The notes: a model not told the origin generated them from the letters alone. Positions 3,641 through 14,685 are shown, counted from the whole stretch's first letter. The stretch: DNA of 63,334 nucleotides, filler included, from Octopus bimaculoides (GCF_001194135.2; 4 parts of 4 records of this genome joined end to end with filler, not necessarily neighbours in it); one strand, 5' to 3'. Numbers and translations: made by a program.

Positions 3641-3813
3641 ATGATCCTCGATGTGAAATTGAAACCGGACTGAATAAAGATCCAACTGATTGTAACCGTT
3701 TTATTCCATGTTATAACGGCACCTCTTACCTCTCAATGCCATGCCAAAAGAACCTACATTTTAATGTTGCGGAACAAAGATGTATGGAACCGGAAAAATC
3801 GGACTGCGAATAA
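3641..3813 (+). CDS. Terminal exon of a paralogous chitin-binding (CBM14) gene; upstream exon(s) not visible in the window
   Basis: Acceptor tttcccttAG at 3639-3640, phase 1. Reads (D)DPRCEIETGLNKDPTDCNRFIPCYNGTSYLSMPCQKNLHFNVAEQRCMEPEKSDCE then TAA; six Cys; 36/57 identical to the 8817-9001 exon by manual alignment. AATAAA overlaps the stop (3809-3814). Confidence 0.88.
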
Positions 3814-4929
3814 AATGGTTCGTATTGCGTTTTCAGTAAATGCTTCCTCGAATTATGGTTTACAGTTTTTAATTGCATTTAGCTTAATAGAAGCAAAATG
3901 TTCCATTTAGACAGATAGAGAGTTAATTTGTATTTTTATTGTATTAAAATGCAATTGTTAATTAGAAACGATGTATACTCCTCTGTCGTACACAACACAT
4001 GAGGGTTCTATAATTTCCTGCTGAACAACATGCACAGATGTTTTTGTAGTGATCAAATGTTTGTGCTGCACATTAGCTCACTTCCTCCATCAAATTGACA
4101 TTGCATGTACAGGTGCATGGTGTACTATACGCATGCGTCAAAGTGATCGCAGAGCAACGTACTCAAGAACTCCCGACGCACTAATGTCGAGAATCGAAAC
4201 CATGATCTCGCGATCGTGAATGCAGGACCCTAATCATTGGGTCAGGTACCTTCACAAATTACAATATACTGTGTTATTGAAGTTAGGGAATTTTGCTTTT
4301 ATAATGGAGCACAGACAAACTTTGCGTCTAAATTCCACGTTCCTGTTAAAATCTTGCATTAATGCAAGATTCTGTAGCCTCAAACCTATTTTCCCATTGA
4401 TTTTCATACTATAAATTAAGGTGTGAGCGTTCAGACGGATTTTTCAAAAAGATGTAATACGATCACTTTTATGCATAAAAATATTAATTTTTAAAAACAT
4501 TCAGTATAGTATGTCTACATAAAAAATGTACTTCAAGTGAATAAAAGAAAATCAAAGCACTGTAGTAAAATCGAAGACACTCACCACAAAAGAATTTGAT
4601 TATGATGAGTAGGTGCTTTGTGGGGTTACTAAGAGGAAGAAGGAACATGCTTTCGCGTCGTTTAGATCATCGCGATCAGTGTCTACTGCAGGAGTGAAGA
4701 AATAAATCAAACTTGTTTGACGTTTACTTCACACCGACTTTTATACAACCCAATGTTGGAACTGAGCTAATTATGTACTCTTCCTGTAACTTTATGTTAC
4801 ATCCACAATTAGAATCATTATCAGCAAAGACGTATTGACCTTCCTCATTAATTACTAAATTTTCAGCCATATTATTTGTAGCTAACTGATATGGAGAGAA
4901 GCAAACATCTACATCTAAGTCTTTCTCTA

Positions 4930-5810
4930 CGGCTCATTCTTGTCCTAACAACATTAGCACCATTTCTCCATAGGACCCTAACAACTCAGCCACATCCTCT
5001 TCGAGTTCTTCAAACCTTACCTTATTTCCCAATGTTAGAATACCTGGTTGAACATGATGTAAACTTTCTGTTGATGGAAAACTTATAAAATCACGGATAT
5101 AGCCGAGCAGTATGTTTTGGCTTGATAGCATACATTCATAACTCAGGGTTGCTTCGCGCCATGACTCAGTTATGATATCTATTGCATCCATAATTTTTAA
5201 TTTTCTAAGAAATCCTTAACTGTAGGTTTACCATCTCCATCATTATCCTTAAGGTGTTGTTTCAAAATTCTCAGATAATATACCTTGAACTTAGCTACCA
5301 TACCTTGATCTATTTGCAAGAAGTTGTGTTTTTAGGGATACATTTTATATCAGAAAAATCATTTAAGTGCACTAGATTTTGGTGCAAAGTCTTAAAGGAG
5401 CAAAGCATTGTTAAAAATATTACACCTGGCACTGAATTTCCTATAACAGAATTAAAATGTAAGCCAATTATGGAAAAGGTCTGTAGTTATGCAAGCCTTT
5501 ATATTTAAACGCCAAACCCCAGGCTAATTAAAATCCTAGCGTTTTGTAAAGGATGCACAAACAAAGGCTATAAATTCGTATCGCCGGCGGCGTTTCCTCT
5601 CACAAGAAGCGTAAGATGATTTTTGTGAAAGCTTTAAAGTCAACTGCTGATTTTCTTTACTAGAAATAAAACTTCTAGTCGGCATGCGTATGGAAAAAGC
5701 GCCAGTTTCACCAGTATTAACTCTTTCAGCAATAATTTTCTTTAAGTTTTCAAGATAGTTCGTAGTAACCTTTGTATCATCACTGGCATTTTCACCATAA
5801 ACTATATACT
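4930..5810 (-). mobile_element. Decayed Tigger/pogo-family DDE transposase fragment
   Basis: Minus-strand peptides GENASDDTKVTTNYLENLKKIIAE...TGETGAFSIRMPTRSFIS and KCIPKNTTS / IDQGMVAKFKVYYLR / IMDAIDIITESWRE match Tigger motifs (GEAASAD, NVDETA, PNTTS-LQPMDQG, AWEEV). Stops and frameshifts present. Confidence 0.8.
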
Positions 5811-5993
5811 CCCACACATTGCGTACACACATATACACACAAACATTGGCACAAATCATTTCTAAGTACGCGCGCGCGCGCACATACACACTCACGCGCG
5901 CACGCACACGCACACACGCACACAAACACACACACACACACACACACACACACACACACACACACACACACACACACACACACACTACACACA

Positions 5994-6217
5994 AGCTGGC
6001 AGAAACGTTAGCACGCCGGGCGAAATGCTTAGCGGTATTTCGTCTGCCGCTACGTTCTGAGTTCAAATTCCGCCGAGGTCGACTTTGCCTTTCATCCTTT
6101 CGGGGTCGATTAAATAAGTACCAGTTACGCACTGGGGTCGGTATAATCGACTTAATCCGTTTGTCTGTCCTTGTTTGTCCCCTCTGTGTGTAGCGCCTTG
6201 TGGGTAGTAAAGAAATA
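5994..6217 (+). mobile_element. SINE family B (tRNA-derived), intact-looking copy
   Basis: agctggcagaaacgttagc (A-box-like), gagttcaaattcc (B-box-like), core ctttgcctttcatcctttcggggtcgat...aagtaccag. Confidence 0.88.
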
Positions 6218-12191: not shown

Positions 12192-12530
12192 GTGGAAGCG
12201 TGTGGCTTGGTGGTTAGAGTATTCGGTTCAATATCGTAAGGACGTAAGTTCGATTCCTGGTGGCGCGTTGTGTCCTTGGGCAAGGCACTTTATTGCAGGT
12301 TGCTTCAATCCACTCAGCTGGCAAAAATGAGTTGTATCTGCAATTCAAAGGGCCAGCTTTGTTACACTCTGTATCACATTCTGTGTCACGCTGAATCTCA
12401 TTGAGAGCTACGTTAAGGGTGCGCGTGTCCGTGGAGTGCTCAGCTGCATGTATGATAATTTCATGAGCAAGTTGTTCCGTTGATCGGATCATCTGGAGCA
12501 CTTGCCTTCGTAACCGATGGAGTGTCAGTT
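12192..12530 (+). mobile_element. SINE family C variant
   Basis: gtggcttggtggttagagtattcgg head, gttcgattcc B box, same core (ctgtgtcacgctgaatctc...ctacgttaagggt...gttccgttgatcggatc). Confidence 0.8.
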
Positions 12531-14009
12531 ATGTCTCTGACTGTTTCTCTCTCTGTGTGTATGTGTGATAACATACGTACATAAATGCATGCATACATAC
12601 ATACATACATACATACATACATACATACATACATAAGGTCATGTACTGTTAATCTTGGTATGAGATCATCATGTTGCACACATATGGTTGTGATGCATGT
12701 GCCTGGTGTACCCTTATCAGACAGGTAGTCATGATGGGTATAATGGGCTTCGTATATTTTACCCCAGTGTCACTTTGATGGCATGCGCTGCTTTCTCATA
12801 CATACATAATACATTCATACATACATACATACATACATACATACATANNNNNNNNNNNNNNNNNNNNNNNNNNNNNNNNNNNNNNNNNNNNNNNNNNNNN
12901 NNNNNNNNNNNNNNNNNNNNNNNNNNNNNNNNNNNNNNNNNNNNNNNNNNNNNNNNNNNNNNNNNNNNNNNNNNNNNNNNNNNNNNNNNNNNNNNNNNNN
13001 NNNNNNNNNNNNNNNNNNNNNNNNNNNNNNNNNNNNNNNNNNNNNNNNNNNNNNNNNNNNNNNNNNNNNNNNNNNNNNNNNNNNNNNNNNNNNNNNNNNN
13101 NNNNNNNNNNNNNNNNNNNNNNNNNNNNNNNNNNNNNNNNNNNNNNNNNNNNNNNNNNNNNNNNNNNNNNNNNNNNNNNNNNNNNNNNNNNNNNNNNNNN
13201 NNNNNNNNNNNNNNNNNNNNNNNNNNNNNNNNNNNNNNNNNNNNNNNNNNNNNNNNNNNNNNNNNNNNNNNNNNNNNNNNNNNNNNNNNNNNNNNNNNNN
13301 NNNNNNNNNNNNNNNNNNNNNNNNNNNNNNNNNNNNNNNNNNNNNNNNNNNNNNNNNNNNNNNNNNNNNNNNNNNNNNNNNNNNNNNNNNNNNNNNNNNN
13401 NNNNNNNNNNNNNNNNNNNNNNNNNNNNNNNNNNNNNNNNNNNNNNNNNNNNNNNNNNNNNNNNNNNNNNNNNNNNNNNNNNNNNNNNNNNNNNNNNNNN
13501 NNNNNNNNNNNNNNNNNNNNNNNNNNNNNNNNNNNNNNNNNNNNNNNNNNNNNNNNNNNNNNNNNNNNNNNNNNNNNNNNNNNNNNNNNNNNNNNNNNNN
13601 NNNNNNNNNNNNNNNNNNNNNNNNNNNNNNTATATATGTATATATCATATGGGTGGCAATTTTACAACCTAATGGCAAAAATATATACGTCACTAAAGTG
13701 AATAAGGGCTCTAATCAGCACCAGTATTGCTAGAAATGAGAATCAAAACAACTCAATAGCCAACAAAAGCACTATATAAGCTGACAATGCGATAAATTTA
13801 ATCCTAGGCGCAGTGAGAGCCACTGATGAGCGTTAAGATGCATAAGCATCAGAAAGCGAAATCATCAATGATCTGATTGTATTTGCGACCATAAGGAGTT
13901 TGTCTCCCTTGTCAGTTCATTAAGATTGTGCTTTTATTGGCTATTGAGTTGTTTTGACTCTTATTTCTATCAATGCTAGTGCTGATTAGTGCTCTTGTTA
14001 ATTTAGAGA

Positions 14010-14114
14010 CGTGTGTGTGTGTGTGTGTGTGTGTGTGTGTGTGTGTGTGTGTGTGTGTGTGTGTGTGTGTGTGTGTGTGTGTGTGTGTGTGTGTGTGTGT
14101 GTGTGTGTGTGTGT
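14010..14114. repeat. (GT)n microsatellite, about 52 units
   Basis: Read directly from the sequence. Confidence 0.97.
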
Positions 14115-14402
14115 GAGCGTGCGCCCGCGCGTGCGTGCGTGCGTTTAAGTGTGTGCGCGCATGCGTATGTATATTCGTGTAAAACGTTTGGTTAATTTAT
14201 GTCTCCCTATCTCAAGAAGAAACTTAGACATTCGTTAAATTGTGATGGTAAAAATATATTCCAGACTGAAATAACGGAGACGGAAGAAGGTAGATATGAA
14301 ATGTTGAAATACTTTGAAGGTATTGCTGCATATTGGCCACAATTTAATGAGTGAAAACCGCAAAATAATTAAATCAAAGGTGTAATTTTAAAACGTACTT
14401 AC

Positions 14403-14685
14403 TCAACTTTCCTCCGTAAAAGGCGCGATCACAATCGTCGAAACCACTATGTCTATACACACAGACTTGTAAAGACTGAGAAAACACCGTTCCTTTGCCA
14501 CATGACATCTTAGTACTCAAAGACAAATCGCCTCTGCAATCAAAGAACTCTTGACAGTTGACGGGCGATCTTACAAAATTGGTTTTCGTTCTTTTAGCTA
14601 CCATCTCACATAATGATGTGACATTTTCACCACCGGCTTTTACTGATATACAACAGAATACAAGTAGGGCTACAATTAGACGCAT
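14403..14685 (-). CDS. Exon 1 of a secreted chitin-binding protein: signal peptide + peritrophin-A (CBM14/ChtBD2) domain 1
   Basis: ATG at 14685; hydrophobic leader MRLIVALLVFCCISVKA; six Cys spaced C-x17-C-x5-C-x11-C-x12-C-x9-C with typical motifs (SPVNCQEFFDC, SCGKGTVFSQSLQVC); GTAAGT donor at 14402-14397 after 283 nt (phase 1). Confidence 0.9.

Follow-up and report, generated by a model that had tools for sequence, protein, structure and literature searches.

Two exons that encode similar cysteine-rich peptides face each other at about 90.49 Mb on Octopus bimaculoides chromosome CM046606.1, which raises the question of whether they are the ends of two maintained genes, and of which kind, or whether one of them is a relic or a product of the assembly. 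The structures of the genes and the domains they encode, together with conservation and synteny at this locus, make it very probable that the exons belong to two paralogous genes placed tail to tail. Both would be members of a cephalopod family whose small proteins, predicted to be secreted, contain two CBM14 domains, the gene on the plus strand being unannotated in the records examined. Positions are those of the window, the whole stretch of DNA analysed (63,334 nucleotides, filler included), in which position y corresponds to record position 90485712 + y of GCA_001194135.2 CM046606.1. The features are as follows.

3641-3813, plus strand: terminal exon of the plus gene (sequence, Pfam, exon of the O. 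vulgaris orthologue)
3814-8816, no strand: intergenic spacer between the convergent stop codons (collinearity with O. vulgaris)
8817-9001, minus strand: terminal exon (exon 2) of LOC106869808 (sequence, Pfam, match to P0001)
9002-14402, minus strand: single phase-1 intron of LOC106869808 (donor read, collinearity with O. vulgaris)
14403-14685, minus strand: coding part of exon 1 of LOC106869808 (sequence, Pfam, match to P0001)

The two terminal exons are convergent (plus 3641-3813 and minus 9001-8817), and each carries a complete six-cysteine CBM14 domain. The plus exon ends with a TAA codon at 3811-3813 and the minus exon with a TAG codon at 8819-8817, so that the tails lie 5.0 kb apart from stop to stop, as had been estimated in the sequence-only reading (about 5 kb). 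The acceptor of the plus exon reads ...tttcccttAG/AT GAT CCT CGA TGT, with the AG at 3639-3640 and the exon starting at 3641, and that of the minus exon ...cttttccAG/AT GAT CCG CTC TGT, with the AG at 9003-9002 and the exon starting at 9001; both exons begin in phase 1 directly before D-P-x-C, in accordance with that reading. Besides an assembly gap (7568-8047), microsatellites occur in the spacer, as does a dispersed repeat (5991-6251). Scans of the region for tRNA and Rfam families detected no RNA genes. The Pfam scan rendered three CBM14 (PF01607) domains and no other domain, and a search of all stop-to-stop ORFs of the region with a custom HMM did not find a fourth one. The long ORFs at 6943-7236 on the plus strand and at 4934-5191, 8972-9361, 12217-12528 and 16045-16297 on the minus strand had no Pfam match, and were treated as non-coding or repeat-derived.

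The three domains score above the gathering cut-off of CBM_14 in Pfam (22.1 bits): 41 bits for the plus exon (ORF 3610-3813) and 35.8 bits for minus exon 2 (ORF 9014-8820), both over positions 1-53 of the 53 of the profile, and 36.5 bits for minus exon 1 (14685-14403), over positions 6-53 of 53. All six cysteines are kept in both terminal exons, as had been noted before, and they are spaced identically (12-5-10-12-7), while the spacings in the two first exons, that of the minus gene and that of the O. vulgaris plus gene, are 17-5-11-12-9 and 17-5-10-12-9. As judged from the profile scores together with a six-cysteine spacing of the CBM14 type, the three domains can be assigned to this family. 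An AlphaFold2 model of the annotated minus-gene protein, P0001, built from a four-sequence alignment, was of low confidence (mean pLDDT 47, pTM 0.31), and PDB entry 8in3, a 25 kDa polyphenol-binding protein, matches by sequence over both domains (E = 7e-8).

Joining the two exons of the minus gene at their splice sites yields the annotated 155-aa LOC106869808 (P0001), with 100% identity and coverage. Exon 1 starts with an ATG at 14685, which is followed by a signal-peptide-like hydrophobic leader, MRLIVALLVFCCISVKA, and by the first CBM14 domain, and it matches residues 1-94 of P0001 at 100%. The donor of the intron reads TTG A/GTAAGT, with the GT at 14402-14401, and exon 2 encodes (N)DPLCKNDTG...NCQLYTS, the second CBM14 domain. 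No CBM14-like ORF was found inside the intron (9002-14402), nor was any additional family exon found in the gapless intron of the O. vulgaris minus gene. A search of the literature found no paper mentioning LOC106869808. The orthologue in Argonauta hians has 159 aa and is 68% identical, and a second copy was not found within 10 kb downstream of it.

The plus exon encodes (N)DPRCEIETG...SDCE, followed by its stop codon, which is overlapped by an AATAAA at 3809-3814. The annotation records examined for O. bimaculoides and O. vulgaris do not call a gene for this copy, and the exon (57 aa) had no match in a database of 5.8 billion protein sequences, a search whose coarse word index excludes only near-identical annotated proteins. 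Its counterpart in O. vulgaris, at 19174-19004 of the homologous locus (L002), is identical in 56 of the 57 amino acids, with the acceptor AG, the stop codon and the AATAAA conserved. On the same strand, 10.3 kb upstream of this terminal exon, L002 29731-29459 contains an ATG, a hydrophobic leader, MFRVISVILLLIATVKC, a six-cysteine CBM14 domain and a phase-1 donor, TAC A/GTTAAGT, so that the signal-peptide-type exon that had been called for upstream of the plus copy is present in O. vulgaris. The upstream exon fits the terminal one, since a phase-1 donor suits a phase-1 acceptor, and the protein predicted from both has 148 aa; GTTAAG is not the best donor consensus. The corresponding exon 1 of O. 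bimaculoides is expected ca. 6.7 kb to the left of base 1 of the window, beyond an assembly gap, the DNA left of base 1 being a run of N (L001 24686-25869); it is known through O. vulgaris, and could be damaged in O. bimaculoides. The O. vulgaris annotation includes, in addition, a transcript model of 27 kb, which begins within the intron of the minus gene, is spliced at a cryptic donor located in the terminal exon of that gene and then runs across the plus gene in antisense orientation.

A BLASTP comparison of the plus and minus terminal exons rendered 37 identical residues out of 57 with no gaps (E = 8e-30), or 36 of 56 when the split first codon is left out, which agrees with the 36/57 without indels counted previously. 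The nucleotide differences between them number 14, 9 and 28 at the first, second and third codon positions, and the inverted DNA similarity of the pair (72.5%) is limited to the coding part (3639-3798 versus 9003-8844). With pN = 0.20, pS = 0.74 and dN 0.23, omega is about 0.07 (Fisher p = 1.7e-8). Between O. bimaculoides and O. vulgaris, the plus exon shows three synonymous changes and one non-synonymous change (omega 0.08, p = 0.024), the selection test with both orthologue pairs pooled gives p = 4e-5, and the exon differs at 4 of 173 positions (2.3%) versus 79 of 926 (8.5%) in its flanks (p = 0.0026). The dN/dS ratio is thus far from 1 in both comparisons, and this pattern of substitutions indicates that both copies are retained under purifying selection since the duplication. 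The duplication itself must be old, judging from the saturation of synonymous sites and from the loss of all similarity outside the coding sequence, and it probably predates the split between Octopus and Argonauta.

Two of the alternatives concern the reality of the plus copy. According to one of them, the pair was created by the assembly, either because contig 3494-7567 is misplaced or inverted or because it is an uncollapsed haplotype duplicate. The O. bimaculoides assembly is indeed rich in gaps, and this exon-bearing contig is flanked by two of them (3335-3493 and 7568-8047); however, a DNA identity of 72.5% that is confined to coding sequence is not that of a duplicated haplotype, and the order, orientation and spacing of the exons are the same in the gapless O. 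vulgaris chromosome, where the terminal exons lie at L002 13609-13791 (plus) and 19174-19004 (minus), 5.2 kb apart. Window positions 257-17236 are collinear with that locus across every gap, with the flanks in the same orientation and the spacer corresponding to L002 19000-13794, so misassembly is unlikely and no misplacement of the contig is indicated. Gap 7568-8047, which corresponds to 448 bp of O. vulgaris sequence, belongs to the intergenic spacer; gap 12848-13630, whose aligned flanks are separated by 409 bp in that species, falls in the only intron of the minus gene. Neither of them is crossed by a reading frame. The artefact can therefore be considered effectively refuted, and the earlier proposal of two maintained genes, rather than a recent assembly duplicate, holds. 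It could also be the case that the minus gene is the only real one, and the plus copy a non-functional relic, i.e. an orphaned or recently silenced duplicate of a last exon, as might be thought from its lack of annotation in both octopus records, the absence of any database protein containing it and the N run that hides its first exon in O. bimaculoides. We regard this as quite improbable. Both octopus species preserve the open frame with its six cysteines, as well as the acceptor AG, the stop and the AATAAA; the exon evolves with an omega of 0.08 between species and 0.07 with respect to its paralog and is significantly better conserved than its flanks; and in O. vulgaris it is preceded, in the same orientation, by an undamaged first exon that encodes a leader peptide and matches it in phase. 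Moreover, enough time has passed since the duplication for synonymous sites to become saturated, and a copy that had died would not still have an open frame.

A different kind of alternative accepts both genes but not their duplication as a whole: the last exons alone would share a recent origin, or would have undergone ancient gene conversion, and the first exons would derive from different members of the family. The C-terminal domains of the plus and minus proteins are 65-67% identical and the N-terminal domains only 45%, whereas between the Argonauta orthologue and the minus gene these values are 64-66% and 76%, respectively, and in neighbour-joining trees the plus gene groups with P0004, P0005 and DgCBP-2 by its N domain and with the minus/Argonauta clade by its C domain. 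Bootstrap support for these groupings is weak, however (28% and 59%, respectively), the domains are short (about 57-75 residues), and the same identities are explained if constraint is unequal or if one lineage has a faster-evolving N domain. Gene structure does not discriminate, because the phase-1 intron and the 94-aa exon 1 are common to the whole family. This alternative is unlikely, but somewhat less so than a relic. As a more speculative extension, to which we give a low probability similar to that of the relic, the plus gene might be a functional chitin-matrix gene of the octopod lineage whose last exon was kept similar by ancient exchange between the facing exons, and which may be affected by transcriptional read-through from the minus gene; if so, convergent transcription could have the effect that a tissue expresses one paralog or the other, but not both.

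Under the preferred reading of two paralogous genes, further members might be sought nearby, and they had been anticipated upstream of base 1. LOC106869807 is located on the same chromosome, 40 kb to the left of the window, and has a 94-aa exon 1 and the same architecture as the pair; the first exon of the plus gene itself is expected on that side too. The cluster is loose, with three genes in about 65 kb, and in O. vulgaris the next 17 kb past the plus gene contained no further copy. LOC106869807 and the O. bimaculoides paralogs P0004 (A0A0L8H3S3) and P0005 share with the studied pair the two CBM14 domains, a length of 152-158 aa and the architecture, but differ from it in sequence, with 27-58% identity per domain; P0004 and P0005 are 51-53% identical to the plus protein.

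Regarding function, each gene would consist of two coding exons separated by one long phase-1 intron, exon 1 providing a signal peptide and CBM14 domain 1, and exon 2 providing CBM14 domain 2 and the stop codon. Secretion and chitin binding are predicted from the domain family and the appearance of the leader. Once secreted, the two presumably disulphide-knotted domains of the protein, of about 15 kDa, would each bind chitin, so that the protein could coat or cross-link chitin fibrils in an extracellular matrix such as that of the beak, the radula, the gut cuticle or the sucker lining. Such a role is the one proposed for squid DgCBP-2, and we infer it here by analogy; transcription of the plus gene, and the tissue in which the genes would be expressed, are likewise presumed. 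One probably functional and so far unannotated member is thus added to the cephalopod family that contains a squid beak chitin-binding protein, with at least three members within about 65 kb of one octopus chromosome. This is a modest gene-family result that leaves general views unchanged, of use for annotation and for research on how chitin is organised by proteins in beaks, radulae and cuticles.

Among known systems, the general peritrophin-A/CBM14 proteins (insect peritrophins and mucins, the Physella acuta peritrophin-1-like protein, 8in3) share the six-cysteine domain, and that of the gastropod P. acuta, with 159 aa, is also a two-domain protein of similar size. Identity of these relatives to the octopus proteins is, however, only about 30-44%, many of them are long, with 5-20 domains and mucin linkers, and they work in other matrices, e.g. 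the peritrophic membrane of the gut. The closest characterised relative is chitin-binding beak protein 2 of Dosidicus gigas, DgCBP-2 (AKI30063.1, UniProt A0A0G2UIZ7), in line with the link to molluscan chitinous matrices drawn in the sequence-only reading. The DgCBPs are reported to bind chitin as part of the scaffold of the squid beak (bioRxiv 10.1101/2020.01.08.899344; PMC9716703). Transcripts of the family have also been reported from the digestive tract of squid (stomach and intestine) and from chiton radula. LOC106869808 is 46% identical to DgCBP-2 over residues 5-130 (E = 2.5e-27). DgCBP-2 has a leader followed by a CBM14 domain, and it can be aligned across the N domain and the first part of domain 2, as far as ...NDPLC...RFIPCF, whereas its deposited C-terminal half leaves the CBM14 pattern after the third cysteine of domain 2. 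DgCBP-2 is a squid protein, to which the octopus genes are related by sequence. The sizes are similar, 158 aa in DgCBP-2 versus 155 in LOC106869808 and about 148 in the plus protein, and by their predicted composition, a leader and two CBM14 domains in ca. 150-160 aa, LOC106869808 and the O. vulgaris plus protein appear to fit a DgCBP-2-like class.

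Listing the ORFs of the first piece of the window in six frames and scanning them with Pfam (CBM14 cut-off 22.1 bits) gave three CBM14 domains; the family HMM, run over every ORF of the piece, found no fourth.

CBM14 domains in positions 1-17236
3641-3813, plus strand: terminal exon of the plus gene, Pfam 41 bits
9001-8817, minus strand: terminal exon of the minus gene, Pfam 35.8 bits
14685-14403, minus strand: exon 1 of the minus gene, Pfam 36.5 bits

Both terminal exons are preceded by a polypyrimidine tract and AG, begin with AT GAT CC. (phase 1, directly before D-P-x-C) and carry six Cys with an identical spacing of 12-5-10-12-7. 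They align ungapped with 37/57 identical residues (E = 8e-30), and their facing stop codons lie 5.0 kb apart. The sequence-only reading had described the pair accurately to the base.

The minus gene is already annotated, since the two-exon protein deduced from its splice sites matches Octopus bimaculoides LOC106869808, a 155-aa "uncharacterized protein", from end to end at 100% identity. The gene belongs to assembly GCA_001194135.2, chromosome record CM046606.1, in which position y of this first piece is record position 90485712 + y. Exon 1 starts with ATG at 14685 and a hydrophobic leader, MRLIVALLVFCCISVKA, followed by the CBM14 domain, and ends at the donor TTG A/GTAAGT (GT at 14402-14401); the one extra base and the AT of exon 2 make Asn, and DPLC... 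follows. In Argonauta hians, a 159-aa orthologue (68% identity) has the same two exons, separated by a 9.2-kb intron (BAAFZT010000013.1, 11.64-11.67 Mb), so that the assembly gap in the octopus intron hides no exon. The octopus intron also contains a low-complexity CTT/GTT/TTG-rich stretch (10350-10900), read as long poly-Leu ORFs in the plus-strand frames and as Asn/Ser/Thr-rich ones in the minus-strand frames; nothing marks it as an exon, as neither the annotated protein nor the Argonauta orthologue has any such linker.

The plus exon, 3641-3813, has no gene call in the O. bimaculoides record and is found in no protein of the large sequence database searched. In a gapless 47-kb comparison locus of O. 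vulgaris (L002, from GCA_951406725.2), its orthologue lies at 19174-19004 in the equivalent tail-to-tail position, is 56/57 identical, and has conserved the acceptor AG, its stop codon and the AATAAA that overlaps this stop. A candidate first exon (29731-29459), 10 kb upstream on the strand of this terminal exon, carries an ATG with the leader MFRVISVILLLIATVKC. Its six-Cys CBM14 domain is 40% identical to that of minus gene exon 1 by tblastn (45% over mature domains by alignment), and the exon ends in the phase-1 donor TAC A/GTTAAGT. An upstream exon with a putative signal peptide, whose absence would have counted against the plus copy, is present in O. vulgaris. Joined, the two exons give a predicted protein of 148 aa with the standard family architecture, which in the database comes closest to two further O. 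bimaculoides paralogs (51-53% identity); the sources searched therefore lack an annotation of this gene. The plus gene is a new, probably functional member of a known family. Synteny predicts its first exon in O. bimaculoides at about 6.7 kb to the left of base 1, on the far side of an assembly gap.

It could be argued that the pair is an assembly duplicate, or that the plus exon is a decaying relic. The first was rejected because inverted DNA similarity within the piece is limited to 3639-3798 versus 9003-8844, at 72.5%, and pS between the terminal exons is saturated (0.74, with pN = 0.20; omega about 0.07, Fisher p = 1.7e-8). The relic was rejected on low omega (0.07, and 0.08 for the plus exon between O. 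bimaculoides and O. vulgaris, with 3 synonymous and 1 non-synonymous changes, p = 0.024) and on the lower divergence of the plus exon than of its aligned flanks (4/173 versus 79/926 sites, p = 0.0026). The minus exon shows 5 synonymous and 1 non-synonymous changes between the two species. Omega between the exons is far from 1, which together with the saturated pS bears out the proposal of two maintained genes; judged by these substitutions, the pair is an old duplicate under purifying selection.

Identity between the two genes is 65-67% in the C domains and only 45% in the N domains. A neighbour-joining tree of the C domains places the plus exon outside the group of the Octopus minus gene and Argonauta (bootstrap 55-59%), whereas in the N-domain tree the plus gene joins, weakly (28%), the O. 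bimaculoides paralogs P0004 and P0005 and Dosidicus gigas chitin-binding beak protein 2 (DgCBP-2). This contrast, with its weak tree support, may point to exon-level exchange or to unequal rates. In Argonauta a second copy is absent within 10 kb downstream or upstream of the minus-gene orthologue, the tail-to-tail partner being either lost, moved or further away.

Real assembly gaps (N runs) flank the piece on both sides (6119-7449 and 24686-25869 of the fetched O. bimaculoides locus), and two lie in the gene pair.

Gaps and adjoining repeats
7568-8047: assembly gap, 480 N, spacer between the two stop codons
12848-13630: assembly gap, 783 N, sole intron of the minus gene
1448-1553, 3286-3334, 7524-7567, 8155-8255, 12797-12847, 15194-15253: microsatellites at gap edges

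No reading frame crosses the two gaps. Window 257-17236 aligns collinearly with L002, in a single orientation and through the flanks of every gap, at 86-94% identity, with lower values towards the left end where repeats abound. The 480-N gap corresponds to 448 bp in O. vulgaris, and the flanks of the 783-N gap are 409 bp apart there; gap lengths and O. vulgaris distances differ by up to about 600 bp. Because of this collinearity, contig 3494-7567, whose misplacement had been considered, is in the right place and orientation, to the extent that a sister species can tell. Most gaps of the piece adjoin a microsatellite, (TA)n, (CATA)n or (ACAT)n, (TCT)n or (CA)n, the last visible as Cys/Val and His/Thr repeat ORFs; these tracts probably caused short-read assembly breaks there.

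Several other features were observed. The O. vulgaris model LOC115213491 (odd, 145 aa, L002 10001-37204) starts with a short exon within the minus gene's intron, MASASKVSKLNGEVG, without a signal peptide, uses a cryptic phase-1 donor (GAA A/GTAACT) inside the minus terminal exon, continues in an exon DNLEISKP... at the edge of gap 7568-8047, crosses the plus gene in antisense, and ends 27 kb away in low-complexity sequence rich in Arg and Gly. Its two small exons are kept in the window (10964-11008 and 8049-8072, minus strand), and the model probably represents read-through or a non-coding transcript that was wrongly called coding. A frameshifted pogo/Tigger-type transposase fossil (16768-17236, plus strand; Pfam DDE_1 E = 6e-13, and 8e-4 for the next piece in another frame) is cut by the piece end; just upstream, a tandem repeat (16523-16769; 3.7 copies of a 69-bp unit, 77% matches) accounts for repetitive ORFs on each strand. 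The dispersed repeat at 5991-6251 (about 160-260 bp), adjoining a (CA)n tract, has at least 10 copies on both strands in the 47-kb O. vulgaris locus (71-94% identity) and looks like a SINE-like element; tRNA and Rfam scans gave no match to it.

A full HMMER search rendered 272 relatives at E <= 0.001, mostly long multi-domain CBM14 proteins.

Short relatives that carry a name
D. gigas DgCBP-2: 158 aa, 46% identity
O. bimaculoides LOC106869807: 158 aa
O. bimaculoides LOC128248024: same chromosome, 23.4 Mb
Physella acuta peritrophin-1-like proteins: gastropod set

LOC106869807 (record 90436078-90445730, minus strand) is 40 kb away from base 1 of the window, on its left, and has a first exon of 94 aa like that of the minus gene. 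At least three family genes thus occur within about 65 kb, which supports the suggested local family of paralogs, but they form a loose cluster: the 17 kb that follow the plus gene in O. vulgaris and the 10-kb flanks of the fetched loci contain no additional copy.

DgCBPs are described as chitin-binding scaffold proteins of the squid beak (bioRxiv 10.1101/2020.01.08.899344; PMC9716703), and related transcripts have been reported in squid gut and chiton radula. By analogy, both octopus proteins would be secreted into a chitinous matrix and bind chitin bivalently; the predicted structure model was of too poor quality to inform function.
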